From NCBI RefSeq assembly GCF_001194135.2, contig NC_068983.1:68676950-68740949 (forward strand): a stretch of DNA of 64,000 nt, read 5' to 3'. Source of the DNA: Octopus bimaculoides. Its lineage: Eukaryota. This document shows positions 6,706 to 62,977 of the stretch, in pieces; positions within the stretch are counted from its first letter, which is position 1; every line of letters starts with the position of its first letter. The notes beneath the pieces were generated by a model that worked only from the letters and a program-made list of their open reading frames with translations, did not search any database and was not told the DNA's origin. Both the position numbers and the translations under genes were made by a program.

Positions 6706-7530
6706 GAGTCTAAAAAATTTCTTTAAGAGGATATGGGCCAACAGCTTTTTGGGATCTGACGTTATGCCATAAAGCTAAACCATTTATAGACGGGAAATCT
6801 AAGGTATTCCCATAAACTGGCCTTCCCCATTTTTAATATATGCTGCTCTACAACTTCTTTTGGATTTGTTTTCTACAAACGATAGTGGCAGATACCAGTG
6901 TCACACAAATGGCACCCATGCTGGTGGCACATAAAAGCACCCATTACACTTTTGGAGTGGTTGGTGTTAGGAAGAGCATTCAGCTGTAGAAACCATGCCA
7001 AATCAGACTGGAGCCTGGTGTAGCCTTCCAGCTTGCCACCCCTCGATAGATGAATATGTATGTATGTTTGTGCGTGCGTGTGTGTGTGTGTGTGTGTGTA
7101 AACATGTACCTCACAAAAAGTATTGAGTAATCCTTCTGTTTAATGTCAAATTACTTTTATATGTTTTAACAANNNNNNNNNNNNNNNNNNNNNNNNNNNN
7201 NNNNNNNNNNNNNNNNNNNNNNNNNNNNNNNNNNNNNNNNNNNNNNNNNNNNNNNNNNNNNNNNNNNNNNNNNNNNNNNNNNNNNNNNNNNNNNNNNNNN
7301 NNNNNNNNNNNNNNNNNNNNNNNNNNNNNNNNNNNNNNNNNNNNNNNNNNNNNNNNNTATATACATACATACATATACACACACAGTTATTACCGATAAA
7401 TGTACGTGTATATTGATTCCTATAAGTTACTTTTTCTAAACTCTGTGAACTAAATATAAAACTTGCGTTCGATTGAAGTCCTTGTAAGAACTGGCTCTGT
7501 TTGTCCCGAGTCAAATGTTACCAGTTCAAC

Positions 7531-7646
7531 ATGGCTGACATCCGACTCGCGAGTTCATCTGTTCGGACAAAAAACAAGTTTCAGCCTTCAGTAGAGAACT
7601 TGGTTACTCCAGGAGATGTTATTACATCAGACACATGTTTCATGAG
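7531..7646 (+). CDS. EXOSC2: EXOSC2/RRP4 exosome cap subunit, exon 1 (MADIRLASSSVRTKNKFQPSVENLVTPGDVITSDTCFM-R)
   Basis: ATG in strong context (caacATGG). LVTPGDVITSD..FMR matches the RRP4 N-terminus. Donor AG|GTAAGT, phase 2. Confidence 0.93.
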
Positions 7647-8439
7647 GTAAGTTTAAAATGATGGTTGACTAACATTAAATTCATCCTTATTTTTCCTTGT
7701 GTTTATTTTCAGCTTCCCGCTTAAAGTTGATAGCTTCACGTTGCTGTGATGTTTAGAATGTTTTGATTATAAAGGAGCTCAGAGTTCACGGCATTGAATA
7801 AGTGTGTAGTTAGAAGTAAAGTTTTAAAGAATTTAGAGTCAGATCCCACTTCATGGAAAGAATCTTTTCAGTTTGTAAAGTTCATTTGCAACCGCTCAAA
7901 ACATTTCTCAAATTTTATACTGCGCGAAACCTTGTGATTCCAGCATGTGCAACATCATGAAATTTATTTACTGAATTTTGTCGATCACCATGACTCTCCT
8001 TGAACATTATATTTCTTTGGATAAATTATTAGGAGAAAGCTATCATTCCTACCCAATATCACGATTATTAAGAACTATATTTTTACGGGTATCAATGGGG
8101 AAATGATAAATATTAAATTATGCCCTGAATGTACACTTCAATCGGGTTCGAAACAGAATCGCTTTAATCAGTCTGAACTTTCCCACTGCCGACAAAGGGA
8201 GCCAACCGGATCTAATTCTAATCGATATAGAAAACACGCCAACAATACTGGAAACAGAATGTCTAAAGATTTACCTACTGCAAAGTAGACTATATTTCCC
8301 TATCAAAGCAAATACATGTGATCTGATGAGTGAACTAACAGACGTACAAGAAACCGTTCATAGCAGGCGCTACCAGCAAATAAAAACAAACCAAAGTATC
8401 TGGACTAAATTCAAAACATACTTGGATCGTAGGGCGACC

Positions 8440-8763
8440 TGCTGTGCTTGAAGAGAACTATTGAGTCAAGTACATCAACATCAAAATGAAAATCAAATGG
8501 AAATTGTAGTTGTGATACCCGTGCTGGTGGCACGTAAAAAGCACCAACCGATCGTGGCCGTTGCCAGCCTCCTCTAGCCCCTGTGCCAGTGGAACGTAAA
8601 AAGCACCCACTACACTCACAAAGTGGTTAGCGTTAGGAAGGGCATCCAGCTGTAGAAACACTGCCAGATCAGACTAGAGCAACCTCCTGGCTTCCCAGAC
8701 CCCGGTTGAACCGTCCAACCCATGCTAGCATGGAAAACGGACGTTAAACGATGATGATGATGA
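8440..8763 (+). mobile_element. RTE 3'-end fragment
   Basis: GCATGGAAAACGGACGTTAAAC(GAT)n end. Confidence 0.85.
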
Positions 8764-9402
8764 CTTCTCAGTATGACTTAACTGTTAATGCCACAGAAAG
8801 CCATGAGTACTATCTGGTGGTGTTGTATACAAACGTGTCCTATAGAGCTACTTATTTTAGTTATAGAGCTATTTACTTAGTTTAATTAGTTTATTAAAGG
8901 CAGCTCTAAAATTATTTCTTCAAGATAGTTGAATACAATTCTGAAAAGCTCTTTCTTTTGCTAAACTAGATGAATAACAGAATGTGAATCGACTGGTTAG
9001 CATGTAAAAAAAGCAAGTTTGGTTTGTAAAGGTGGGAAACTGGCATGTCTTGTGTAATACAAGGTACATTGCTGAATGTACATCTGTGAGGTGTGAGATT
9101 TTCAAAGTTACCATTAATGTAGACGACAGGCTATAGTGTTATTTAGTATAAAACTGAAACTGTTTAAAAACATCAGACACATATACAAATGGTATAACAA
9201 TACAAATTGATCTCAAGAAATGGAAAATGAAGTCAGTTAAGGAAGGAAGGTTAGAAACTTTGGGCAAAACAGGGTTCAGAGTGAGAGAACCCATGGGTGA
9301 GAAGGGATAGTGGGGATGAAAGGCAGCTGTTGATAAGAAAACTAAATAAGGTAAAAAGACATTATTTACTATGGATGGATAGGTGTCCTCACCTTTGTTG
9401 TT

Positions 9403-9448
9403 ATCACAATGTTTTGGCTGATGTACTCCCCAGCCTCCATTAGGTTTT
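9403..9448 (-). ncRNA. Decayed hammerhead motif, inverted partner copy
   Basis: Minus strand reads AAAAC-CTAATGG-A-GGCTG-(10 nt)-CAGCC-AAAAC-ATT-GTGAT. Stem II is intact and the core is mutated. Confidence 0.55.
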
Positions 9449-9735
9449 TTGGTGGAATTTTGAACCCAACCCTTTATTTGACTAATGGGGTATTCTTTTT
9501 TACTGATGTTATTTTTTTTTGTTGATATTATTTCCCAAGTCCCAGTCTGGGATTGAACTCAGAATCCGAGGGTACATAACATAGTGGATAAGAGTGCGGG
9601 CTACTGACACTCGGATTCTGAGGCAGGGACTTGGGAAATAATACCAAAAAAAAAAAAAGAAAACAGAATACCTTAGGAATGAGAACAGGGCACTCCCATT
9701 AGTCAAATAAAGGGTTGGGTTCGAAATTCCACCAG

Positions 9736-9776
9736 AACACCTGATGAAGGCTGGAGAGTACATCAGCCGAAACATA
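9736..9776 (+). ncRNA. Minimal type-I hammerhead ribozyme motif (core intact, 3' strand of stem I deleted)
   Basis: AACAC-CTGATGA-A-GGCTG-(10 nt)-CAGCC-GAAAC-AT. Confidence 0.7.
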
Positions 9777-10368
9777 ACAACAAATAAGGTGAGGACACCT
9801 ATCTGTCCATTGTAAATAATGTACATAATTCCTCTTCTCAAAAATATAGAATGGTGAGGAAAACAGAATTAGATGTTTATATTTTATTACTGACCAATGC
9901 ACAAATAAGATAGAGGAATTGTAACTAAGAATTGCAAACTTCAGACCACAAAGTACTCATATTACTGTAGAACACAAGATATAATTGAATAAAGTTGAAT
10001 TTTGTATTAACAAAGCAATAAACACCTTCCACGCTGCAAACTATAAAGTCTTTTTAAAGAATATTGAAGAGAATAGTGAGAGGATTACTGTTTTATGTAA
10101 ATAGTATGTTAATAGCATTAGGTGAATCTGAACATGGGTTTTGAAGAAAGCTTATTTGTATGAAGGTTGTCCTGAAAGTAATGTATAAGTGGGAATAACT
10201 TTTTTTCATATATATGAATGATATACATAAGGCTTCTCAGCCTGTTAGTGTCCAATTTGAGTTGAAAAATCTCATGGAATTATGGCTCCTGTTGAATGAG
10301 ATTTTAAATCTTTATATATTAATGAGATGATTTATGAAAGACCATTATTTTTTCGTTTTGTTTCATAG

Positions 10369-10470
10369 AGGACATGGCACCTACACAGCGGATGACCGAC
10401 TTCATGCTTCAGTGGCTGGTGTTGTAGAGAGAGTGAATAAGTTGATCTGTGTACGTCCTTTGAAAACGAG
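10369..10470 (+). CDS. EXOSC2: EXOSC2 exon 2 (GHGTYTADDRLHASVAGVVERVNKLICVRPLKT-R)
   Basis: Acceptor tttcatAG, 102 nt, donor GTAAAG. Conserved RRP4 motif GHGTY...ASVAG.VERVNKLI. Confidence 0.96.
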
Positions 10471-12139
10471 GTAAAGTATAATTTTTTTCAAATAGCCCCA
10501 GAAATTCATAGGGCTGGTAAGTTTCTGTGTTATTGAATAGAGGTGGATGGGATTGTTAGAGTTATGTCCCTTATGTCATTAATTGCCGTGTTTATGATTT
10601 CTAACAATTAGTGTGTTAACATTTTCGAGGAAGACGTGTAATCTCAGCTTCATGACTAGTGTCAGTTGATCCCAAATTGTGACTGGTATGCATTTTCATC
10701 GACCCAGGAAGAGGAAAATCAATGTCAACTACCGTGAAATTTTGAACATAGTATATAAAGGAACGTAACTATATAGCGTAAGGCATTTGAAAGGTTTGCA
10801 CTACTTTTCTGTCATTCTGCCATTCTTATAAATGAAATGGAAACATAATTTTTGCAGTAGAGTCTGTATTAATGAAATTTGTTAATTGGTGATAGATTGA
10901 CAGTAATGATATTTACAATGTATAATTGAAAAAAAATTTTAAAAGAAAATTTCTTTAGGCAAAGCTAACATTCTTTAGTTTAATTTTCGAATGAAGCAAG
11001 ACCTCTCATAGGCAGGGATAAATTTCTTTTGAGGATTTTAACTCTGGAATTCTTAGGTTTATATAAATTTTAATATATTTATTTGTTGATGAGAATATAT
11101 TTTATTAGCATAAATTTTTCACTGTCACTTTTCTGTTTTTTTTTTTTTTACTCTTTTACTATGCATAAATCTCAATTATCTTTAAGTCTATTTTGCTTTC
11201 TTGCCAAATGAGAAAATAGCATAAATACTCTTTGTATTCTTTATGATACATGAAAAATAAAAAGTTTCTGGCTGTAGCAAAAAGGAAAAACAAACAACTT
11301 CAAAGAATGTAGCAATGAAGATTTTATGCTGCTAAAATGTATCTTAGCCTGTTCTCATCATCATCATCATCATATGTTTATTTTCCATGCTGGCAAGAGT
11401 TGGACGGTTTGGCAGGGCGCTTGTTAGGCAGGAAACTGCACCAGGTTTCACTGTTTTGGTTGGATTTTAATGGCTGGATGCTCTTCCTAACACCAACTAC
11501 CTTACAGAATGGGCAAGCTTTAGTTTTTCAAAGCTCACTGTGTTTATAATGAGAAATCAACTTGATTTGTTAGGATTGTTTGTCCCAAACTCTGTTTACG
11601 CATCTATTACAGAAAACTTTCTAGGAAGTTCTGCTACTTATTGCCCTACTATTAGGTATGTAGATTACAGCATCCTACCCAGATACCCAGTAATATGCCT
11701 GTACTAATATTCCAGTAATATGCCTGTAATTATATTGTTATCTAGTCCAGGAAGGCACAACGTTGTCTATATCTTTATTTGAGATTGATCAAATAAGTTT
11801 TTTAGTGTTTTGGTTACATATATTGGAATATTTGATGACAGGGTCTTAGCTTTTGATGTAGGTGTAGAAGCACCATTGCAACAAACACTTTAAATTGGAA
11901 ATTTCTTAAACCTGCCAGAGCCTACTCTTCTTCAAAGAAAAATAAAACAAAGAATTGATCCCGGTTTTGACCAGGTTACTTTATTTATTGACCTTGAAAG
12001 GATAAAAGGCAAAGTTGACCTTGGTGATATTTGAAGTCAATGCATAAAGAGCCAAAATAAATACCACAAAGCATTCTGTCTTCTGCTCTAATGACTCTGC
12101 CAATTTGCTGCTTTTTATTGTAATTACCCTAATTATAGA

Positions 12140-12556
12140 GGGAACATATGGCAGGGGTAGACCCAGGAAAATGTGGAACAAAATGGTGAGAAAGGATCTA
12201 CAGATGCTGGGGTTCACAAAGGAGATGACAGGGCACTGAGATTCCTGGTGGTTTGCTGTACTTGAAGAGACACATCAGGCTAAGTAAAAGTGTGGTTGTC
12301 CTTGCATACAGGCTTGTCCCCTGCATCCCTAATCTTGCGGGCTCATAGGTACTGGTGCCATGTTAATGCACCCATGCCAGTGCTGTGTAAAAGCACTCAG
12401 TACACACTCTAAAGTGGTTGGTGTTAGGACGGGCATCCAGCCATAGAAAGCATGCCAAAACAGACATTAAGCCTGGGCAGCTCTTCAGCTGGCCAGTTCC
12501 TGTCAAACTGTTTAACCCATGCCAGCATGGAAAACAGATGTTAAATATAATGATGA
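12140..12556 (+). mobile_element. RTE 3'-end fragment (older)
   Basis: GRGRPRK-like ORF end, 3' UTR and short tail. Confidence 0.8.
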
Positions 12557-22207: not shown

Positions 22208-23323
22208 TATNNNNNNNNNNNNNNNNNNNNNNNNNNNNNNNNNNNNNNNNNNNNNNNNNNNNNNNNNNNNNNNNNNNNNNNNNNNNNNNNNNNNNNNNNN
22301 NNNNNNNNNNNNNNNNNNNNNNNNNNNNNNNNNNNNNNNNNNNNNNNNNNNNNNNNNNNNNNNNNNNNNNNNNNNNNNNNNNNNNNNNNNNNNNNNNNNN
22401 NNNNNNNNNNNNNNNNNNACACACACACACACACACAACGTGCTTCTTTCAGTTTTTGTCTATCAAATCCACTCACAAGGCTTTGGTCGACCCAGGGCTC
22501 TGACATTTGACTAAGGTGCCATACATTGCAAGATCTGTGTAAACTTTCATTTCTTTAAGCTGTTCACTTTTGATGAAGAGCCTTTGTGCCTGAAATATAT
22601 AAAGGTTCACTTTACTTTCCCTTCTGCAGTGTAAGAAGCTCTCCATCTTCATTATTTGTTATTTTATTCCTGTATCACAATGCTTCAAGCAATCTGCCAC
22701 GTTCTTCGTTAAAAACTAATTTTAATTTGAAAATTGAAATTTTAGGGTCATAGAAAATGATGCATTTGAACAGTTAAGGGATTATCTCCCTTAGACTTGC
22801 TTTCGTTTCAAAACAAACCTCTTATCTCGTTTTGATGCATGTTCGCACGCGCGCGACACACACACACACAGTATACCCAGTAACAAGTACAGAGTTGATA
22901 GTCGTGATTTTAAGCCTTACTATTAAAGTCATTGTACAAGTCACAAATTCTATTTGCCTGACATTCATAAACAATTTCTCCTCTAATTTCGTATTTCAAT
23001 GGCATCCAGCAGATAATTCATCCCCCTCTCTCAAGGAAAGAAAATTATGGTAAATACTTGTGTTATATATATGTATAATATATCATTATCATCATCATCA
23101 TCATTTAGCACCCGCTTTTCCTTTCTTGCTTGGATCAGATGGAATTTGCTTAGGCAGGTTTTCTGTAGCCAGATGTCTTTCTTTTCACCAAACCATTCCT
23201 GTTTCCAAGCAAGACATGTTTTTCACAGAAGACTAGAAATGAACAACATTGCTTGTATGACAGTCATACTTTTACTAATCATCATATGATGTCAAGGTAC
23301 ATTTACATGCATATACACATCAG

Positions 23324-24431: not shown

Positions 24432-25394
24432 ATCATCATCATTTAACGTCCGCTTTCCATGCTAGCATAGGTTGGACGATTTGACTGAGGACTGGTNNNN
24501 NNNNNNNNNNNNNNNNNNNNNNNNNNNNNNNNNNNNNNNNNNNNNNNNNNNNNNNNNNNNNNNNNNNNNNNNNNNNNNNNNNNNNNNNNNNNNNNNNNNN
24601 NNNNNNNNNNNNNNNNNNNNNNNNNNNNNNNNNNNNNNNNNNNNNNNNNNNNNNNNNNNNNNNNNNNNNNNNNNNNNNNNNNNNNNNNNNNNNNNNNNNN
24701 NNNNNNNNNNNNNNNNNNNNNNNNNNNNNNNNNNNNNNNNNNNNNNNNNNNNNNNNNNNNNNNNNNNNNNNNNNNNNNNNNNNNNNNNNNNNNNNNNNNN
24801 NNNNNNNNNNNNNNNNNNNNNNNNNNNNNNNNNNNNNNNNNNNNNNNNNNNNNNNNNNNNNNNNNNNNNNNNNNNNNNNNNNNNNNNNNNNNNNNNNNNN
24901 NNNNNNNNNNNNNNNNNNNNNNNNNNNNNNNNNNNNNNNNNNNNNNNNNNNNNNNNNNNNNNNNNNNNNNNNNNNNNNNNNNNNNNNNNNNNNNNNNNNN
25001 NNNNNNNNNNNNNNNNNNNNNNNNNNNNNNNNNNNNNNNNNNNNNNNNNNNNNNNNNNNNNNNNNNNNNNNNNNNNNNNNNNNNNNNNNNNNNNNNNNNN
25101 NNNNNNNNNNNNNNNNNNNNNNNNNNNNNNNNNNNNNNNNNNNNNNNNNNNNNNNNNNNNNNNNNNNNNNNNNNNNNNNNNNNNNNNNNNNNNNNNNNNN
25201 NNNNNNNNNNNNNNNNNNNNNNNNNNNNNNNNNNNNNNNNNNNAGTTATCCTCATCCATTCTCACCACATGTCCATACCAGCGCAATCGTCTCTCTTGCA
25301 CACCACAACTGATGCTTCTAATGTTCAGCTTTTCTCTCAAGATACTTACACTCTGACGGGTATTCACATTGACATTACGCATCCAACGGAGCAT
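24432..25394 (-). mobile_element. Young RTE LINE 3' fragment, interior in N gap
   Basis: Tail end left of the gap. LRWMRNVNVNTRQSVSILREKL right of the gap. CpGs retained. Confidence 0.8.
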
Positions 25395-30724: not shown

Positions 30725-31931
30725 TTGGGTCATCTCATAAATAATGCGGTTTTTTTTAAGACTTCTTTTATTTTTCAAAATTAAGATAAACAAAGTTCTT
30801 TTTTAATCTAAAATATACTCACCTTCATTTTCTACAATACTCTTCCATCTATCTGGTAGACTTGCAAGGCCCCTCTTCAAAAATTCACTTGTCCACGATG
30901 AAAAATACTCCTCTAGTACTGTTCAGACCTTGTCTACAGAATTCATATTTTTTTCTGTCCAAATTATTTTGAAGACTGCGGAATAAATGATAATCAGATG
31001 GGGCAATGTCTGGTGAATATGGTGGGTGGGGCATCGTTTCCCATTCAAACTGCTCCAGCCTTTGGAATGTCATCCTTGCTGTATGTGGCTGGGCATTATC
31101 CTGATGGAAGAACACCTTTTGTCTTGAAACCGAAGATAACGCTGTCTTAAGCCACTCAAGCTGCTTGCAGTAGATCTCCTTTGTTATTTGGTTTGGGTTT
31201 AAAAGTTCAAAGTGGACTAAATATTTCATATCCCACCAAAGAGAAAGCAATTCCTTCTTTAGCTTGGGGTGCTGGTGTTTCTCCTTTTCCAACTCACTGT
31301 CTTCAGCGCTTGACATTTTTATTGAGAACCCATTTCTTGTTACCAGTCACTATTTGGTCCAAAAAAGGTTAATTTGTGAGACGTGACAGCAAAGAAGAGC
31401 ACACATTTACTCTGCACATGATTAGACATGGTAAGTTTGTGAGGAACCCATTGACCCAATTTGCTGACTTTTCCAATGGCATGCTAGTATTGATGAATGG
31501 TTGAATGACGAATACAAGCTTCTCTGCTAGTTCCTCAACAGTTACGATGGAATTTGTTCCACCAGGATGTCCTTGTCAAGCTCTACAGATTTTCCAGGAT
31601 GAGGCTTGTCTTCTAGGCTGTAGTTTCCAACTCAGAATTTCTGGAACTACTGTTCCACTGTTGACACTGGCTTATGCTTATTGGCCAATCCCTATATACT
31701 GCATTAATATTCCTTACACTTTCTGTTGTGTTGTTGTTTTTATTGAACTCATAAAGCAAAATATGCCGAATATACTCCTTTGTCACTTCCACAGAACTTG
31801 CACTAAGAATAAGTACAAGGTAAAATTACTGCCTGCTTTTATAGTAAGTTGATGCAGGTAGTTTATCCAATCCCTCTCTGACTTTTAGTTCATGCAATTG
31901 CAAAAACTGCATTATTTATGGGATGACCCAA
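30725..31931 (-). mobile_element. Full-length decayed mariner (DD34D) transposon in EXOSC2 intron 5
   Basis: TIRs TTGGGTCATCTCATAAATAATGCGGTTTTT / AAAAACTGCATTATTTATGGGATGACCCAA with TA at the right end. Fragments EYIRHILLYEFNK, IVTGNKKWV, HQDNAQPH and YSPDIAPSDY give D34D spacing. Contains stops and frameshifts. Confidence 0.92.
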
Positions 31932-34497: not shown

Positions 34498-36020
34498 TCA
34501 TCATTATCATCATCATTTAGTGTCTGTTTTCCATGCTGGCATGGGTTAGATGGTTTGACTAGAACTGGTAAGTTGGGGAGCTGCACCAGGTTCCAGTCCG
34601 TTTTGGCTTGGTTTCTACAGCTGGATGCCATTCCTAATGCCAACCATTCCACAGAATGTTGTGGGTGCCTTTACATCTGATACCTTTTATACCCAATTTT
34701 TCTCTTAAGACACTTACACTCTGTCATACATAAACATTGACATTGCACATCCAGCAGAGCATACTAGCTTCATTTCTTTCAAGCCTTTGCATGTCCTCTG
34801 CAGTCACAGCCCATGTTTCACTGCCATGTAGCATGGCTGTTTGCACACAGATATCTGTCTTTTACTCTCAGGAAGAGGCTTTTTGTTACCAACAAAGGTA
34901 GCAGCTCTCTGAACTTCACCCAGCCTATTTTTATTCCAGCAGCTGCACTCTCAGAGCATCCACCTCCACTGCTTACTTGGTCACCTAGATAATGGAAGCT
35001 ATTTATTACTTCTAAATATTCCCCTGGGCATTTGACAAAGTATATTCTCTGTACATTCCTAGTGTTTATTGTACCTATACACCTGTCACACACAAAGACT
35101 ACTGTTAACCTTCCTCTGATACTGCTGCACCTGTTATGTATCCATAGCTTGCACCAGGTACACTTTATGGAGTTTCTACCTACATCTTTTCTGCATATTG
35201 AGCAGAGCCAGCTCCCTGAAGGGATTTGTGATTTGTCTGTTTTCCTACTTACTAAGACTTTGGTCTTTGCTAAATTAACTCTGAGGCCCTTTAATTCTAG
35301 ACCTTGCTTTCACACCTGAAACTTTTTCTAGTTCTGGTAATAATCTAGCTATAAGAACAAAGTTATCTTCGTAGAGGAGCTCCCAAGGGCAGCCCGTCTG
35401 AAATTCTTTGGGGCTGAGAACTGATCCTTGTTGAATTCCTACTTTGTACATTGAATTCATTGCTACACTCGCTGTCTACTTTCACCTTACTGATAGCATC
35501 CCTGTACTTGGCTTGTACAGCTCTCACCAACCACTCATCTATCCCTAGCTTCTGCATTGACAACCAAATAAGGGAGCAGAGGACCCTGTCAGAGGCTTTC
35601 TCCTATGTCAACAAAAACCAAGTACAGAGGTTTACTTTTGGCTAAGTACTTCTCTTGCTGCTGCCTTAATAGGAATATAGCATCAATAGTGTTTCTCCTT
35701 GGCACAAGACCAAACTGCATCTCATCTAGACTAACTCTTTTCCTAATTAGTTGATCTATGACCTCTGTAACTTTCATCACCTGGTCCAACAATTTGATAC
35801 CTCAGTAACTATTTCTGTCTAAGGCATCACCTTTACCTTTGTAGCAGTTGACTATGGTGCTGCTGCACCAGTCATTGGGCATGACTCCCTTGTGGACAAC
35901 TTGATTAACTGTATGTGTGACTAGACCATATCCTACTCTGCCAGATATTTTTTAGCATCTCAGTGGTGATTTCTGATGGGCTAGGGGCTTTCTCCATCTT
36001 CATACCCTTCATGGCTTATA
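34498..36020 (-). mobile_element. 5'-truncated RTE-clade LINE (RT remnant plus (GAT)n tail), internally deleted
   Basis: Peptides LDQVMKV, LDEMQFG, PLYLVFVD, CPWELLY and SFHYLGDQVSSGGG on the minus strand; (CAT)n tail at the left end. Confidence 0.9.
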
Positions 36021-36429
36021 TATATATAATTTGTATATATNNNNNNNNNNNNNNNNNNNNNNNNNNNNNNNNNNNNNNNNNNNNNNNNNNNNNNNNNNNN
36101 NNNNNNNNNNNNNNNNNNNNNNNNNNNNNNNNNNNNNNNNNNNNNNNNNNNNNNNNNNNNNNNNNNNNNNNNNNNNNNNNNNNNNNNNNNNNNNNNNNNN
36201 NNNNNNNNNNNNNNNNNNNNNNNNNNNNNNNNNNNNNNNNNNNNNNNNNNNNNNNNNNNNNNNNNNNNNNNNNNNNNNNNNNNNNNNNNNNNNNNNNNNN
36301 NNNNNNNNNNNNNNNNNNNNNNNNNNNNNNNNNNNNNNNNNNNNNNNNNNNNNNNNNNNNNNNNNNNNNNNNNNNNNNNNNNNNNNNNNNNNNNNNNNNN
36401 NNNNNNNNNNNNNNNNNNNNNNNNNNNNN

Positions 36430-36947: not shown

Positions 36948-38960
36948 CAGCACCATAGTCAACTGCTACAAAGCTAAAGGTGATGCTTTGGATAAAAATA
37001 ACTACAAGGGGTATCAAACTGCTGGATCAGGTGATGAAGGTCACAGAGAGGGTAATAGCCCAACTAATTAGAGAGACAGTCAGCCTAGATGAGATGCAGT
37101 CCGGTTTTGTATGCTATATTTTTGGTAAAGCAACTGCAGGAGAAATACCTAACCGAAGATAAACCCCTATACTTGGCTTTTGTTGACTTGGAGAAAGCCT
37201 TTGACAAGGTCCCCCAATCCCTTATCTGGTGGGCGATGTGGAAACTAGAGATACATGAGTGGTTAGTAAGGGCTGTACAGGCCTTGTACAAGGATGCTGT
37301 CAGTAAGGTAAGGGTCGGCAACAAGTATAGTGAAGAATTCTGGGTAGAAGTAGGGGCACCAAGGATCAGCCCCCTCTTATTCATCATAGTCCTCCAGGCA
37401 ATGACAGAGGAATTCAAGACAGACTGCCCCTGGGAGCTCCTCTATGCTGATGACCTTGCACTAATTGCTGAGTCACTATCAGAACTAGAGGAGAAGTTTC
37501 AGGTGTGGAAGCAGGGACTAGAATCGAAGGGCCTTTGAGTCAATGGTGCAAAAACCAAAGTCCTAGTAAGTAGGAAGGCTAACAAAATCACAAACCCCTT
37601 CAGGTAGATGGCCCTGCTCGATCTGTAGAAAAGGTATAAGTAGAAACTCCATAAGATATACCCAGTGTAAGTTATGGATGCATAAGAGGTGCAGCAACAT
37701 CAAAGGAAGGTTAACTGGGATGATAGTTTTTGTGTGCGGCAGATGCACAGGGGCAATAAACACCGAAAATGTTCAGAAAACAGATTCCATCACATGCCAG
37801 AGGGAGAAACTAGAAGTAGTTGATAGCTTCCATTACCTAGGTGACCAAGCCTGAAGTGTTGCCACTAGAATAAGAAATAACCTGGGCAAAGTTCAGGGAG
37901 CTCCTACCTCTGCTGGTGACAAAGGGCCTCTTGCTCAGAGTGAAAGGTAGATTGTATGATGCATGTGTGTGAACTACCATGCTACATGGCAGTGAAACAT
38001 GGGCTATGACTGTTGAGGACATATGTAAGCTTGCAAGAAATGAAGCTAGCATGATCCGCTGGATGTGTAATGTCAGTGTGCACACACAACAGCGTGCAAG
38101 CGCCCTGAGAGAAATGTTGGACATAAGAAGCATCAGATGTGGTGTGCAAGAGAGATGACTGCACTGGTATGGTCATGTACTACATATGGATGAGGAGAGC
38201 TGTGTGAAGAAGTGTCACTCCCTAACTGTGGAAGGAACATGTGGAAGAGTTAGACCCAGGAAGACATGGGATGAGGTGGTGAAACACGACCATTGAACGT
38301 TGGGCCTCACAGGGGCCTCAAGTGACCTAGACCTCTGGAGATATGCTGTGATTGAGAAGACCCCAGCAAGTAAAGTGAGATCACAGCTGTAGCCTATACT
38401 AGTGTCGTATAACCAGCCCATTTAAAAAGTACCTTTGAATTGTTGGGCGACACACCGTGCTTGAGGAGACCTATTGAGTGAAGTAAAATCAAAATAAAAA
38501 TTACAATCAGAATCTCAATCAAATCGAAATCAAAATGGAAATTGTAGTTGTGGCTGATGCCAGTGCTACCCGACTGGCTCCCATGTTAGTGGCATGCAAG
38601 AAGTACTTTTCATGCNNNNNNNNNNTGGCTCCCATGTTAGTGGCATGCAAGAAGTACTTTTCATGCATGAGACGATGCCAGTGCTGCCTGACTGGCTCCC
38701 CGTGCCAGTGACACGTAAAAAGCACCATCTGAACGTGGCCGATGCCAGTGCCACTTGACTGGCTCCCATGCTGGCGGTATGTAAAAAGTACCCACTACAC
38801 TCTTGGAGTGGTTGGTGTTAGGAAGGGCATCAGCTGTAGAAACCTTGCCAGATCAGATTGGAGCCTGGTGCAGCCTCCTGGCTTGCCAGTCCCCAAACAA
38901 ACCGTCCAACCTATGCCAGCATGGAAAACAGACGTTAAACAATGATGATGATGATGATGA
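36948..38960 (+). mobile_element. 5'-truncated RTE-clade LINE (RT remnant, 3' UTR, (GAT)n tail)
   Basis: LAFVDLEKAFDKVP, WELLYADDLALIAES and MLHGSETW; 3' end GCATGGAAAACAGACGTTAAAC+(ATG)n. Confidence 0.92.
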
Positions 38961-44419: not shown

Positions 44420-45472
44420 TTACTCTTTACTCTTTACTCTTTTACTTGTTTCAGTCTTTTGACTGTGGCCATGCTGGAGCACCTTTAGTCGAGCAAATCG
44501 ACCCCAGGACTTATTCTTTGGAAGCCTAGTACTTATTCTATCGGTCTCTTGTGCCGAACCGCTAAGTTACGGGGACATAAACACACCAGCATCGGTTGTC
44601 AAGCGATGTTGGGGGGACAAACACATACACACATCAGCCATGCTACATGGCAGTGAAACATGGGCTGTAACTGCTGAGGACATACGTAAGCTCGCAAGGA
44701 ATGAAGCCAGTATGCTCCGTTGGATGTGTAATGTCAATGTGAATACCCGTCAGAGTGTAAGTATCTTGNNNNNNNNNNNNNNNNNNNNNNNNNNNNNNNN
44801 NNNNNNNNNNNNNNNNNNNNNNNNNNNNNNNNNNNNNNNNNNNNNNNNNNNNNNNNNNNNNNNNNNNNNNNNNNNNNNNNNNNNNNNNNNNNNNNNNNNN
44901 NNNNNNNNNNNNNNNNNNNNNNNNNNNNNNNNNNNNNNNNNNNNNNNNNNNNNNNNNNNNNNNNNNNNNNNNNNNNNNNNNNNNNNNNNNNNNNNNNNNN
45001 NNNNNNNNNNNNNNNNNNNNNNNNNNNNNNNNNNNNNNNNNNNNNNNNNNNNNNNNNNNNNNNNNNNNNNNNNNNNNNNNNNNNNNNNNNNNNNNNNNNN
45101 NNNNNNNNNNNNNNNNNNNNNNNNNNNNNNNNNNNNNNNNNNNNNNNNNNNNNNNNNNNNNNNNNNNNNNNNNNNNNNNNNNNNNNNNNNNNNNNNNNNN
45201 NNNNNNNNNNNNNNNNNNNNNNNNNNNNNNNNNNNNNNNNNNNNNNNNNNNNNNNNNNNNNNNNNNNNNNNNNNNNNNNNNNNNNGATGATGATGATGAT
45301 GATGATATATACGACAGGCTTCTTTCAGTTTCTGTCTACCAAATCCACTCACAAGGCTTTGGTCAGCCCGAGGCTATAGTAGAAGACACTTGCCCAAGAT
45401 GCCACACAGAGGGACTGAACCCGGGACCATGTGGTGGGTAAGCAAGCTACTTACCACACAGCCACTCCTGCA

Positions 45473-59140: not shown

Positions 59141-60415
59141 NNNNNNNNNNNNNNNNNNNNNNNNNNNNNNNNNNNNNNNNNNNNNNNNNNNNNNNNNNNN
59201 NNNNNNNNNNNNNNNNNNNNNNNNNNNNNNNNNNNNNNNNNNNNNNNNNNNNNNNNNNNNNNNNNNNNNNNNNNNNNNNNNNNNNNNNNNNNNNNNNNNN
59301 NNNNNNNNNNNNNNNNNNNNNNNNNNNNNNNNNNNNNNNNNNNNNNNNNNNNNNNNNNNNNNNNNNNNNNNNNNNNNNNNNNNNNNNNNNNNNNNNNNNN
59401 NNNNNNNNNNNNNNNNNNNNNNNNNNNNNNNNNNNNNNNNNNNNNNNNNNNNNNNNNNNNNNNNNNNNNNNNNNNNNNNNNNNNNNNNNNNNNNNNNNNN
59501 NNNNNNNNNNNNNNNNNNNNNNNNNNNNNNNNNNNNNNNNNNNNNNNNNNNNNNNNNNNNNNNNNNNNNNNNNNNNNNNNNNNNNNNNNNNNNNNNNNNN
59601 NNNNNNNNNNNNNNNNNNNNNNNNNNNNNNNNNNNNNNNNNNNNNNNNNNNNNNNNNNNNNNNNNNNNNNNNNNNNNNNNNNNNNNNNNNNNNNNNNNNN
59701 NNNNNNNNNNNNNNNNNNNNNNNNNNNNNNNNNNNNNNNNNNNNNNNNNNNNNNNNNNNNNNNNNNNNNNNNNNNNNNNNNNNNNNNNNNNNNNNNNNNN
59801 NNNNNNNNNNNNNNNNNNNNNNNNNNNNNNNNNNNNNNNNNNNNNNNNNNNNNNNNNNNNNNNNNNNNNNNNNNNNNNNNNNNNNNNNNNNNNNNNNNNN
59901 NNNNNNNNNNNNNNNNNNNNNNNNNNNNNNNNNNNNNNNNNNNNNNNNNNNNNNNNNNNNNNNNNNNNNNNNNNNNNNNNNNNNNNNNNNNNNNNNNNNN
60001 NNNNNNNNNNNNNNNNNNNNNNNNNNNNNNNNNNNNNNNNNNNNNNNNNNNNNNNNNNNNNNNNNNNNNNNNNNNNNNNNNNNNNNNNNNNNNNNNNNNN
60101 NNNNNNNNNNNNNNNNNCCACCACCGCCTCCGCCTCTTCCGTAATGCTGTAATAGCACCCATCGGTGCCATATTAATGCAGAAGCAAAATAATTATCGGT
60201 AACAAGATCTTATCCAAAGAATTTGTACTTAAAATTCCGCCCTAAGTAGATTCTTCGTTTCTTTTTGTCTTTTATTATATATATATATATATTTTTTTTT
60301 ACTGTAGTTATTCCTCTTTCTTTTCTTCTATTTCTTTCAAAAACAAAAACAAAAAAAAAGCTTCATACTATATAATTCTGAAATGATTAAAATCTTTTAT
60401 TTGTAAACATATTCA

Positions 60416-61251: not shown

Positions 61252-62977
61252 NNNNNNNNNNNNNNNNNNNNNNNNNNNNNNNNNNNNNNNNNNNNNNNNN
61301 NNNNNNNNNNNNNNNNNNNNNNNNNNNNNNNNNNNNNNNNNNNNNNNNNNNNNNNNNNNNNNNNNNNNNNNNNNNNNNNNNNNNNNNNNNNNNNNNNNNN
61401 NNNNNNNNNNNNNNNNNNNNNNNNNNNNNNNNNNNNNNNNNNNNNNNNNNNNNNNNNNNNNNNNNNNNNNNNNNNNNNNNNNNNNNNNNNNNNNNNNNNN
61501 NNNNNNNNNNNNNNNNNNNNNNNNNNNNNNNNNNNNNNNNNNNNNNNNNNNNNNNNNNNNNNNNNNNNNNNNNNNNNNNNNNNNNNNNNNNNNNNNNNNN
61601 NNNNNNNNNNNNNNNNNNNNNNNNNNNNNNNNNNNNNNNNNNNNNNNNNNNNNNNNNNNNNNNNNNNNNNNNNNNNNNNNNNNNNNNNNNNNNNNNNNNN
61701 NNNNNNNNNNNNNNNNNNNNNNNNNNNNNNNNNNNNNNNNNNNNNNNNNNNNNNNNNNNNNNNNNNNNNNNNNNNNNNNNNNNNNNNNNNNNNNNNNNNN
61801 NNNNNNNNNNNNNNNNNNNNNNNNNNNNNNNNNNNNNNNNNNNNNNNNNNNNNNNNNNNNNNNNNNNNNNNNNNNNNNNNNNNNNNNNNNNNNNNNNNNN
61901 NNNNNNNNNNNNNNNNNNNNNNNNNNNNNNNNNNNNNNNNNNNNNNNNNNNNNNNNNNNNNNNNNNNCAGGGACATGAACACACTAGTATCGGTTGTCAA
62001 GCGATGGCAGTGGGGAGACAAACACGGACACGCACACATAAAAACATATATATATATATATACACATATATACACACACACTCATATTTTGTGTTTCATT
62101 TTTCTTGTTTGAATTACCAAACCTACACACATACACACACGAGTGCGCGCGAGATGACTTGCCTTTGTTTTCATTAATATGTGAATATACTCTTGCATTG
62201 CATAATGCTGAGGAAACATATTGATGCAAATATGTACGAATAATTTTTGAATAATAAAATTGATATTACAAGATAAAAGTTACGAAACGGCTGTAATCAT
62301 ATGGCGGTCATATGGAAAAATGAATTTATCTTTACGTCTCATATCTCCTGACTTTATACATTGCTTACTCCATGCTGAGAAATTTAACGCTCAAATTTTC
62401 TGGATTTTCATTTACATTACCTAACATTACATTGTAATTGACTACTACGTGGACTGATAGCCGTCTCCGAATGAGGAGCTTACTGTGATAACCGCATAAT
62501 TCTCTGAATTCATAGTTGATGCTTTTATATTTAGTGACTTCGAAGTTTAGGCTTCCTTTCATCAAACTGTTGAACGCAAGCAAACTGAAACTCGGAAGCC
62601 ATTGTCAACCTTTTCCATGTAAAAGTTAATACACACACACACATGTATGTATACTCATACACATACATGTGTGTGTGTGTATTCATTTGCTTTTTGTGAA
62701 CAATAGCATTGACGTTGGATATCATTTTTTAATGAGATTATCACTAATCGCCTGTTCACTGATTTCTGGTGGCAAAGGCAACGAAGTGAGTATTTGTGAA
62801 ACACGGGTGGAATAGATATCACAATGTATGTTTGGTCCATGCACCGGTTTATCAACAATTTCCTCGCTTATGAGTGCGTCTTTCGCAGACACACTTACAC
62901 ACAGACAGATACACACACTTACACGCACTCAAGCACACTCACACATGCATACACACATACAGATAGTTTTCGATCAG

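Follow-up and report, generated by a model that had tools for sequence, protein, structure and literature searches.

Intron 1 of the EXOSC2/RRP4 gene of Octopus bimaculoides contains a nested inverted repeat of about 460 nt, located at positions 9359-9822 of the window (the whole stretch of 64,000 nt that was analysed). This hairpin is probably a head-to-head inverted duplication of one non-autonomous, SINE-like retroelement of about 280 nt, generated in a single event and followed by neutral decay.

Structure and stability of the hairpin

Splicing of the exons present in the window results in a 292-aa protein with 100% identity to XP_014774425.1 (exosome complex component RRP4), and 547 nt lie between the end of the hairpin (9822) and the start of exon 2 (10369), with the hairpin upstream. 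These results confirm the location proposed in the sequence-only reading, which had placed the hairpin in EXOSC2 intron 1, about 550 nt 5' of exon 2. The nested arms, the 18-bp and 13-bp stems and the 39-nt loop described in that reading were all found at the positions it had given (Table 1), and BLASTN matched the left outer arm (9359-9490) to 9822-9695 (87% over 131 nt). The folding of the arms is very stable as well: RNAfold attributed -267.2 kcal/mol to the segment 9359-9822, compared to -114.9 +/- 7.0 for 100 dinucleotide-preserving shuffles of it, none of which was as good (z = -21.75). Approximately 192 base pairs are predicted in this structure, on the sense strand of the intron. The only ORF spanning the hairpin (110 aa), a spurious one, showed no homologue when compared to the protein collection, and it offered no route to further copies of the family.

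Table 1. Positions of the gene parts, hairpin segments and related features within the window.
Feature	Position	Strand	Remarks
EXOSC2/RRP4 exon 1, coding part	7531-7646	+	
EXOSC2/RRP4 intron 1	7647-10368	+	Hairpin within, on the sense strand
EXOSC2/RRP4 exon 2	10369-10470	+	
Sense unit (loop plus right half)	9570-9851	+	About 280 nt
Left half	9359-9570	-	Inverted copy of the unit
Left outer arm, antisense repeat body	9359-9490	-	Pairs with 9694-9822; stops 29 nt before the end of the unit 3' tail
T-rich stretch, antisense of the A-rich linker	9491-9525	-	GTATTC at 9490-9495
Left inner arm, antisense of unit nt ~41-85	9526-9570	-	Strands of the 18-bp (9526-9543) and 13-bp (9558-9570) stems
Loop, unique unit 5' end, nt ~2-40	9571-9609	+	39 nt; A-box-like TAACATAGTGG at 9577-9587
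Right inner arm, unit nt ~41 onward	9610-9643	+	11 nt deleted in O. bimaculoides
A-rich linker	9644-9693	+	GAATAC at 9666-9671, then TTAGGAATGAGAACAGGGCACT at 9673-9694 (last base is the first of the next part)
Right outer arm, sense unit body	9694-9822	+	84% identity to copy 2
Unit 3' tail, ACATAATTCCTCTTCTCAAAAATATAGAA	9823-9851	+	29 nt, beyond the palindrome, no left-side partner
Inverted arms, 44 nt	9359-9402 / 9779-9822		89% complementary
Inverted arms, 81 nt	9409-9489 / 9695-9775		91% complementary
Inverted arms, 46 nt	9503-9548 / 9621-9666		83% complementary
Inverted arms, 16 nt	9558-9573 / 9607-9622		94% complementary
Perfect 18-bp stem	9526-9543 / 9626-9643		
Perfect 13-bp stem	9558-9570 / 9610-9622		
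ORF spanning the hairpin	9509-9841	-	110 aa
LINE-type (R2/L1-like) RT element, intron 6	34673-35862 / 36948-38140		Head-to-head inverted duplication

The repeat unit

The sense unit is SINE-like. It opens with a head that bears pol III A-box-like and B-box-like motifs; the A-rich linker, the body and the 29-nt tail follow in this order. The left half repeats the unit in inverted orientation, but without the first ~40 nt and the tail. As this inverted copy adjoins the 5' end of the unit, the unique 5' end forms the loop. When reverse complemented, the left outer arm aligns to the right arm and to L001:2241-2348 in a second copy of the family (copy 2), and the left inner arm displays the B-box-like motif GAGTTCAATCC; the left-arm row of O. 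bimaculoides in the alignment begins CTCGGATTCTGAGTTCAATCCCAG. The 11 nt lost from the right half of O. bimaculoides, TAGTTCAATCC, comprise the B-box-like motif and are kept in O. sinensis and O. vulgaris (alignment A1, columns 293-303). The 22-nt TTAGGAATGAGAACAGGGCACT of the linker region has no partner in the left arm of O. bimaculoides and forms a bulge in the MFE structure; its partner is present in the other two species. The tail is conserved in both O. sinensis and O. vulgaris, and the similarity to copy 2 spans it (137-column alignment, 84%). This similarity continues 29 nt beyond the palindrome, to 9851, and hence the repeat does not end where the palindrome does. The flanks showed no recognizable target-site duplication, their best match being no better than those of shuffles (186/300).

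Foldback elements and MITEs, such as the Harbinger-derived repeat of Xenopus that is edited without a partner (PMC5625713), are comparable in that nearly the whole element is one long hairpin. The octopus hairpin differs from them in that the repeat outruns the palindrome by 29 nt on one side, no target-site duplication is found and the other copy is non-palindromic, and the pol III box motifs of its unit suggest a retroelement. The ends of a MITE or foldback DNA transposon were rejected, given the family similarity 29 nt past the right arm and the flanks devoid of a target-site duplication; as a whole-palindrome family, this class was rejected on the grounds that the sole other copy is one-armed (n=1).

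Resemblance to tRNA-derived SINEs

The head of the unit bears TAACATAGTGG at nt 8-18 and, in O. sinensis and O. vulgaris, AGTTCAATCCC at nt 52-62. Each motif has one mismatch to the tRNA A or B box and their spacing of 44 nt is canonical, so that in these two species both boxes show the common orientation and tRNA spacing of an internal pol III promoter. Such pairs occur at 0.025 per shuffled window, and the six others in the real window are clear heads of tRNA-derived SINEs. The A box of copy 2, TGGCGTAGTGG, is perfect. The structure-aware tools did not confirm tRNA ancestry: the unit gave no match to the Rfam tRNA model (RF00005) at E<=10, and ARAGORN predicted no tRNA at 100, 90 and 80% of its default thresholds. 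Furthermore, the head shares only weak in-register similarity with the other local SINE heads.

The repeat has the appearance of a tRNA-derived SINE. In O. vulgaris, 11.6% of the genome consists of SINEs, mostly from unclassified families, and Penelope-like elements (PLEs) are active there (PMC13282606). The unit resembles the tRNA-derived SINEs of Octopus in the A/B-box-like motifs at tRNA positions 8-18 and 52-62, in its composite of head, linker and body and in its dispersed copies. It differs from them in having an inverted partner and no detectable cloverleaf, and also in ending without a poly(A) or microsatellite tail, whereas the abundant local SINE ends in (GAT)n. A partner LINE or PLE 3' end for the unit was not found in the sequence examined.

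Copy 2 and the search for further family members

Copy 2 (L001:2213-2480) is non-orthologous to the hairpin and lies 7 kb upstream, so that two non-orthologous loci of the family occur within ~66 kb of O. bimaculoides sequence. It is composed of an antisense body, an AT-rich stretch and a sense head (nt 1-50), the same layout as that of the left half plus the loop. Its head (L001:2434-2480) is homologous to the loop (score of 19, where shuffles average 6.9 and 0/1000 of them reach it), and its end represents a real boundary, since orthology with O. sinensis restarts exactly there (L001:2481 = L006:576). No empty site could be recovered, because the other flank was not alignable to O. sinensis and the O. 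vulgaris site is occupied by a SINE array. The antisense body beside a sense head, which a plain one-off duplication at the hairpin locus would not predict, points to a foldback feature at the level of the family. The palindrome, or at least its inverted head junction, may itself be inherited or regularly regenerated within a foldback SINE family, in which the EXOSC2 copy would be a near-complete member and copy 2 a truncated one. The order of its parts, the significant similarity of its head and its true boundary are consistent with this explanation, which we regard as possible, if doubtful: copy 2 has one arm, not a palindrome (in a sample of a single copy), and the palindrome of the window is asymmetric, with a tail on one side only and no target-site duplication. 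A shared inner junction, initially drawn from a manual alignment, was withdrawn; the stretch between the linker and the head of copy 2 is not significantly similar to the inner stems of the hairpin (426/1000 shuffles), and thus the shared junction is not proven. In addition, only two loci of the family were seen; nothing beyond the orthologues and copy 2 was recovered by nhmmer with a profile of the unit in ~150 kb of Octopus DNA.

Exact-pattern scans of metagenomes with conserved motifs of the family returned 0 matches, and a search with the LINE RT ORF of the window led to ENA contigs, of which the one examined, L005, carried neither an octopus SINE nor a copy of the family. The boundaries of the unit and the mechanism of its origin rest on two family loci, i.e. 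on few copies.

Conservation, age and mode of evolution

The same palindrome was found at the orthologous site of O. sinensis (L002:4821-5277) and O. vulgaris (L004:~11825-12292), and in each of the three species the hairpin folds very stably (-233 to -267 kcal/mol). In Argonauta, no trace of it was found and intron 1 has an unrelated foldback. The structure had already become fixed in EXOSC2 intron 1 when the lineage of O. bimaculoides separated from that of O. sinensis and O. vulgaris. The window contains 14 N gaps (4156 N in total), which could raise the suspicion of a palindrome formed as a chimera in a gap-rich short-read assembly. Such an artefact has a negligible probability, as the arms are 9-13% diverged and differ by indels, unlike those of a chimera, and it is refuted by the presence of the same structure in the independent assemblies of O. 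sinensis and O. vulgaris.

Between O. bimaculoides and O. sinensis, substitutions separate the left arms by 7.2% and the right arms by 6.5%, compared to 7.4% over the intron as a whole. The two arms of the hairpin are 16-17% diverged from each other, a value of ~5% at the time of the species split, and 28-33% from copy 2. As a rough estimate, the hairpin would have formed ~1.7 times as long ago as the split of O. bimaculoides from O. sinensis and O. vulgaris. Across species, the arms group by side, left with left and right with right, showing that the arms diverge independently and that no gene conversion has taken place between them. Compensatory changes were seen in 1/192 pairs, a result equalled or exceeded in 272/500 shuffles. 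Of the pairs of the O. bimaculoides structure, 17 are broken and 26 are lost to indels in O. sinensis, and deletions of 7, 11 and 20 nt that break the pairing have occurred in different lineages. Taken together, these comparisons indicate that the hairpin evolves as neutral intron DNA, although three close species give little power against weak selection on pairing.

Origin of the inverted duplication

Both arms probably derive from a single event, in which reverse transcription ended with snap-back or template-switch synthesis, the mechanism proposed for complex inverted Penelope-like insertions; since then, the hairpin would have decayed as neutral intron DNA. A single origin is indicated by the fact that the arms adjoin without a spacer and are far closer to each other than to copy 2. 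The same evidence bears on an origin from two independent insertions of the same SINE in opposite orientations, in the style of inverted Alu pairs. The window contains 80 inverted pairs of at least 40 nt that are at most 3 kb apart, so that such pairs are frequent. Nevertheless, this origin is highly improbable here, because the two copies have no spacer and overlap at the 13-bp stem, one of them is devoid of both the 5' head and the 3' tail, and the arms were ~5% apart at the species split against the 28-33% that separate them from copy 2.

The sequence-only reading had pointed to Penelope-like elements, which often integrate with an inverted partial copy. In complex PLE insertions, a 5'-truncated copy lies inverted at the 5' end, and a tail of 30-40 bp occurs at one end only (Craig et al. 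2021, PMC8557442). The anatomy of the hairpin agrees with this in its arms: an inverted partial copy, the left half, which comprises the unit from nt ~41 onward, adjoins the 5' end of a fuller copy, and the 5' ends are central. A ~29-nt extension is present on the right side only, but as copy 2 carries this tail too, it may be simply the unit's own 3' end. In addition, PLEs are present and have been active in Octopus (PMC13282606). On the other hand, no hallmark of a PLE was recovered. The ~280-nt unit has no ORF for a PLE/TERT-like RT or GIY-YIG domain, being at best a non-autonomous passenger; a hammerhead ribozyme match at E<=10 was obtained from Rfam neither for positions 8500-10800 nor for the O. 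sinensis orthologue, and the whole window yielded nothing at gathering score; and neither a pLTR or partial tandem copy nor a direct repeat of the unit is present. The unit also differs from PLEs in its size of ~280 nt and its tRNA-like pol III head, and any dependence on a PLE is putative. Furthermore, the head-to-head geometry is not PLE-specific, since the LINE-type element of intron 6, in the same window, exhibits it.

LINE-1 5' inversions are said to arise by twin priming, as reportedly described by Ostertag and Kazazian in 2001. The hairpin is comparable to them in having an inverted 5' segment that would be made during target-primed reverse transcription; however, in twin priming the 5' part is inverted but not duplicated, whereas the hairpin has ~210 nt in both orientations.

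It is also conceivable that a simple SINE insertion suffered a later partial inverted duplication at the DNA level, where a short inverted repeat would have seeded a template switch in replication or a fold-back repair. The arms adjoin and were near-identical at origin, a perfect 13-bp stem lies at the axis, and head-to-head rearrangements recur in the window, as the LINE-type duplication in intron 6 demonstrates. We consider this quite unlikely, given that the duplicated tract is wholly inside the repeat and begins at its 5' end, which an event coupled to integration explains more easily, and that a similar inversion is found in copy 2.

Double-stranded RNA, editing and possible function

Octopus exhibits exceptional hyper-editing and an exceptional load of loci that form long dsRNA (Porath et al. 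2017, PMC5625713), in agreement with the very high ADAR activity of coleoids mentioned in the sequence-only reading. Operationally, dsRNA has been defined by a reverse-complement alignment of at least 50 nt with at least 80% identity within +/-2 kb (Zhang et al. 2023, PMC9989829), and the hairpin, with its 81-nt arm at 91%, has these properties. Because it is on the sense strand, the pre-mRNA should fold into an imperfect dsRNA of ~200 bp, a predicted routine substrate for hyper-editing by ADAR; putative effects on editing and splicing are plausible. In this regard, it resembles intronic inverted SINE pairs (IRAlus), in which two inverted SINE-like copies in one pre-mRNA result in a long, nearly perfect dsRNA, and it differs from them in that its arms come from one event and enclose a 39-nt loop, instead of two independent insertions. 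The differences between the arms showed no excess of A-to-G changes (3 A>G, 3 T>C, 4 others).

A regulatory role, as implied by the earlier reading, found no evolutionary support: the neutral rate of the intron, the lack of covariation and the lineage-specific deletions of paired segments do not favour it. If selected, the hairpin would be a dsRNA that tunes the splicing or expression of EXOSC2 via ADAR editing, or a small-RNA precursor (hpRNA or miRNA-like). It does fold strongly in three species, from the sense strand of the pre-mRNA, and the sole Rfam matches were to long-hairpin miRNA precursor models (plant), all far under their gathering scores. Such a selected element is very unlikely in view of the neutral substitution rate, the pairing-breaking deletions of 7, 11 and 20 nt without covariation, its absence from Argonauta and the annotated RRP4 isoforms, none of which uses intron-1 sequence. 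Exonisation was rejected as well; a donor-like AAG|GTGAGG occurs at 9788, but it has no strong acceptor and is not used by any annotated isoform. Nothing in these data shows that the hairpin is kept for a function or that it regulates EXOSC2.

The hairpin is ordinary for octopus, whose introns commonly harbour structures of this kind. As a single locus it carries little weight, being one more intronic inverted-repeat hairpin, with no sign of selection, in a genome known for them. Two observations point to a family that makes foldbacks, namely the antisense body beside a sense head in copy 2 and the LINE-type element with the same geometry. An undescribed SINE family of Octopus that regularly inserts as head-to-head foldbacks through its integration machinery (PLE-like or other), and that adds materially to the dsRNA and hyper-editing load, is a rather unlikely prospect. 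If such a family exists, each new copy would arrive as a ready-made long hairpin, and if the family or the retroelement machinery of octopus routinely makes foldbacks, this would help to explain the many dsRNA loci and the heavy hyper-editing. The hairpin itself offers a clean, dated example of how a small retroelement can give rise to ~200 bp of dsRNA in one step, and of the pace at which such a structure decays.

Gene context and structure of the hairpin

The window (36% G+C, with 14 N gaps) is contained in CM046603.1 of GCA_001194135.2. Exons were located by tblastn and reading by eye, and when spliced they encode a protein of 292 aa with ECR1_N, RRP4_S1 and KH_6 domains, 100% identical to XP_014774425.1, the exosome complex component RRP4 of O. 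bimaculoides. The exon and intron coordinates therefore place the hairpin, a nested inverted repeat, on the transcribed strand of EXOSC2 (RRP4) intron 1, 547 nt before exon 2, where the sequence-only reading had correctly located it. Direct reading of the region together with a repeat scan and exact checks also recovered the nested inverted arms as that reading had described them. When folded as RNA, 9359-9822 reached -267.2 kcal/mol, compared with -114.9 +/- 7.0 for shuffles (z = -21.75), a predicted stability far beyond chance that bears out the proposed stable fold.

Features of RRP4 and of the intron 1 hairpin, in window positions
Feature	Position	Strand	Description	Basis
RRP4 exon 1 CDS	7531-7646			
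RRP4 intron 1	7647-10368			
RRP4 exon 2	10369-10470			
Outermost inverted arms	9359-9402 / 9779-9822		44 nt, 89% complementary	repeat scan
Long inverted arms	9409-9489 / 9695-9775		81 nt, 91% complementary	repeat scan
Inner inverted arms	9503-9548 / 9621-9666		46 nt, 83% complementary	repeat scan
Innermost inverted arms	9558-9573 / 9607-9622		16 nt, 94% complementary	repeat scan
Perfect stem	9526-9543 / 9626-9643		18 bp	exact check
Perfect stem	9558-9570 / 9610-9622		13 bp	exact check
Hairpin loop	9571-9609		39 nt	exact check
GTATTC; GAATAC	9490; 9666			exact check
Full unit	9570-9851	+	head, A-rich linker, body, tail; loop plus right half	alignment of halves
Left half	9359-9570		unit from nt ~41 to 29 nt short of its end, in reverse complement	alignment of halves

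The repeat unit and its second copy

Neither an Rfam family nor a tRNA was called in the hairpin, and its BLAST search against the window returned only the self-match. The chromosome-scale O. bimaculoides locus L001, which begins 2470 nt before the window, holds a second and non-orthologous locus of the same repeat family (copy 2, L001:2213-2480), lying within the TMEM141 gene, ending at window base 10 and 84% identical to the right arm. This similarity extends past the palindrome by 29 nt and reaches window 9851, so the repeat does not end where the palindrome does: the right half is part of a longer unit, which the left half copies in inverted and shorter form. The unit head carries an A-box-like TAACATAGTGG at nt 8-18 and, in O. 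sinensis and O. vulgaris, a B-box-like AGTTCAATCCC at nt 52-62. The pol III consensus is TRGCNNAGTGG for the A box and GGTTCRANNCC for the B box; each motif has one mismatch to this textbook consensus, their spacing of 44 nt is canonical, and the A box is perfect in copy 2. A scan for A/B-box pairs returned that of the unit and six others in the window, plainly tRNA-derived SINE heads, against 0.025 pairs per shuffled window. No cloverleaf was recognised in the unit head by ARAGORN or the Rfam tRNA model, and we therefore call the unit SINE-like, with an apparent tRNA-type promoter, rather than a proven tRNA derivative.

Copy 2 is a single arm and not a palindrome. Read on one strand, its antisense body precedes nt 1-50 of the sense head (a head match attained in 0/1000 shuffles), an order that it shares with the left half and loop of the hairpin. 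The inversion may thus recur within, or be inherited by, a family seen at two loci only; a search of about 150 kb of Octopus DNA gave no third locus. The end of copy 2 is the exact point at which O. sinensis orthology resumes (L001:2481 = L006:576). On its left side copy 2 adjoins another SINE, and there the orthologous flank in O. sinensis cannot be aligned. Its segment between linker and head shows no significant similarity to the inner stems of the hairpin, so that a junction shared by both loci is not proven.

Origin of the inverted duplication

The two arms abut and were nearly identical at formation, and their divergence from copy 2 (28-33%) far exceeds that between them; therefore, two independent insertions are very unlikely. 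The 5' ends are central, the inverted copy is 5'-truncated and the extension occurs at one end only, three geometric features in which the hairpin matches complex insertions of Penelope-like elements, PLEs (Craig et al., PMC8557442). Octopus carries PLEs, and these have been active there (PMC13282606). The hairpin differs from them, however, in having no RT or GIY-YIG, no hammerhead and no pLTR. Of the earlier proposal of a Penelope-like inverted insertion, the transposable-element origin through an inverted partial copy holds, but the Penelope link is only circumstantial. Head-to-head inverted duplication is also seen in an RT element of EXOSC2 intron 6, whose ~1.2-kb arms (34673-35862 / 36948-38140) are 73% identical and flank a spacer of 1085 nt that includes the N gap 36041-36429. 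The RT ORF of this element (37089-37538, +) lies in the right arm, pointing outward, and has the R2 and L1 ORF2 proteins as closest solved relatives, so the element is LINE-type and not Penelope-type. Considering both the missing PLE hallmarks and this LINE-type element of like geometry, we favor the hypothesis that the hairpin would have formed in one event, by snap-back or template switching coupled to integration, with no commitment to a PLE partner, although a later inverted duplication at the DNA level could conceivably have produced it.

Age and evolution of the arms

The RRP4 loci of O. sinensis (L002, L006), O. vulgaris (L004) and Argonauta hians (L003) were compared. Both Octopus species carry the whole palindrome at the orthologous place, which rules out an assembly artefact and makes it older than their split from O. 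bimaculoides, quoted as 13.3-33.5 Myr (PMC13282606); no trace of it was found in A. hians intron 1 (L003:3118-6858). Ten arm differences (about 5%) are common to all three species, so they predate the split, and no bias towards A-to-G is seen among them. When O. bimaculoides is compared with O. sinensis, substitution divergence comes to 7.2% for the left arm, 6.5% for the right and 7.4% for the whole intron. As a rough inference from 5% before and 7.4% after, the duplication would be about 1.7 times as old as the species split.

Within each species the arms differ by 15.7-17.3%, and across species left arms group with left and right with right, so that they evolve independently, without conversion. 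When the O. bimaculoides structure was mapped on the alignment, 141 of 192 pairs were unchanged in O. sinensis, 7 survived a one-sided change, 1 was compensatory, 17 were broken and 26 were lost to indels. By formal count both sides changed in 1 pair, a number reached by 272 of 500 shuffles. Deletions particular to a lineage have cost the hairpin paired tracts: O. bimaculoides lacks 11 nt of the right half, whereas O. sinensis and O. vulgaris have lost 20 nt of the right arm and 7 nt of the left. At -233 to -267 kcal/mol, the fold remains highly stable in each of the three species; it has simply not yet decayed.

An unrelated nested foldback of ~570 nt occupies L003:4752-5320 in A. hians intron 1 (arms of 60 nt at 82%, 47 nt at 85% and 36 nt at 83%; MFE -195 kcal/mol, z -11.7), beginning right after a SINE (GAT)n tail. 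Therefore, the orthologous intron gained a different hairpin element independently.

Double-stranded RNA, editing and function

In octopus, the share of loci that form long near-perfect dsRNA is reported to be exceptionally high, as is the level of hyper-editing, which falls mostly on neighbouring inverted repeats (PMC5625713; PMC9989829). Long inverted pairs are common in the window, where 80 pairs measure 40 nt or more and have their members within 3 kb, and by its predicted structure the hairpin is a candidate of this kind. If transcribed, it is likely edited, which is a generic property of such repeats and no evidence of a role. The RRP4 isoforms annotated for O. sinensis and O. vulgaris all leave intron 1 out; this, with the arms evolving neutrally, leaves the suggested regulatory role unsupported, and the best reading of the hairpin is a neutral transposable-element remnant. 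Separately, an inverted SINE pair (8674-8763 / 11355-11444; 90 nt, 71%) lies in introns 1 and 2 and so brackets exon 2, where it could in principle favor back-splicing.

Other repeats in and around the window

An abundant SINE of ~245 nt ending in (GAT)n is found at window 8520-8764 and many other sites, with >20 copies, whole or partial, in L001; it is also present in O. sinensis, Argonauta and O. vulgaris, where its 5' part forms a tandem array (L004:700-1156). The six tRNA-derived heads, whose A and B boxes are canonically spaced, lie at window 2189, 14977, 18158, 32826, 45464 and 53869 and fall into three or more families. A piece of a mariner-like transposase (DNAQPHTARMT...PYSPDIAPSDYHLF) and C-terminal pieces of LINEs broken by N gaps occur at 30885-31316 (-), 24462-25394 (-) and 44640-45290 (+). 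A 586-nt contig carries a protein recorded as 'RNA-directed DNA polymerase, partial [Escherichia coli]' that is 70% identical to the octopus LINE RT; this bacterial entry probably contains eukaryotic contamination. The N gaps total 4156 N, among them 7173-7357, 22211-22418, 24497-25243, 36041-36429, 44769-45285, 59141-60117 and 61252-61967, and several are bordered by microsatellites or low-complexity runs, as is typical of a short-read draft assembly.
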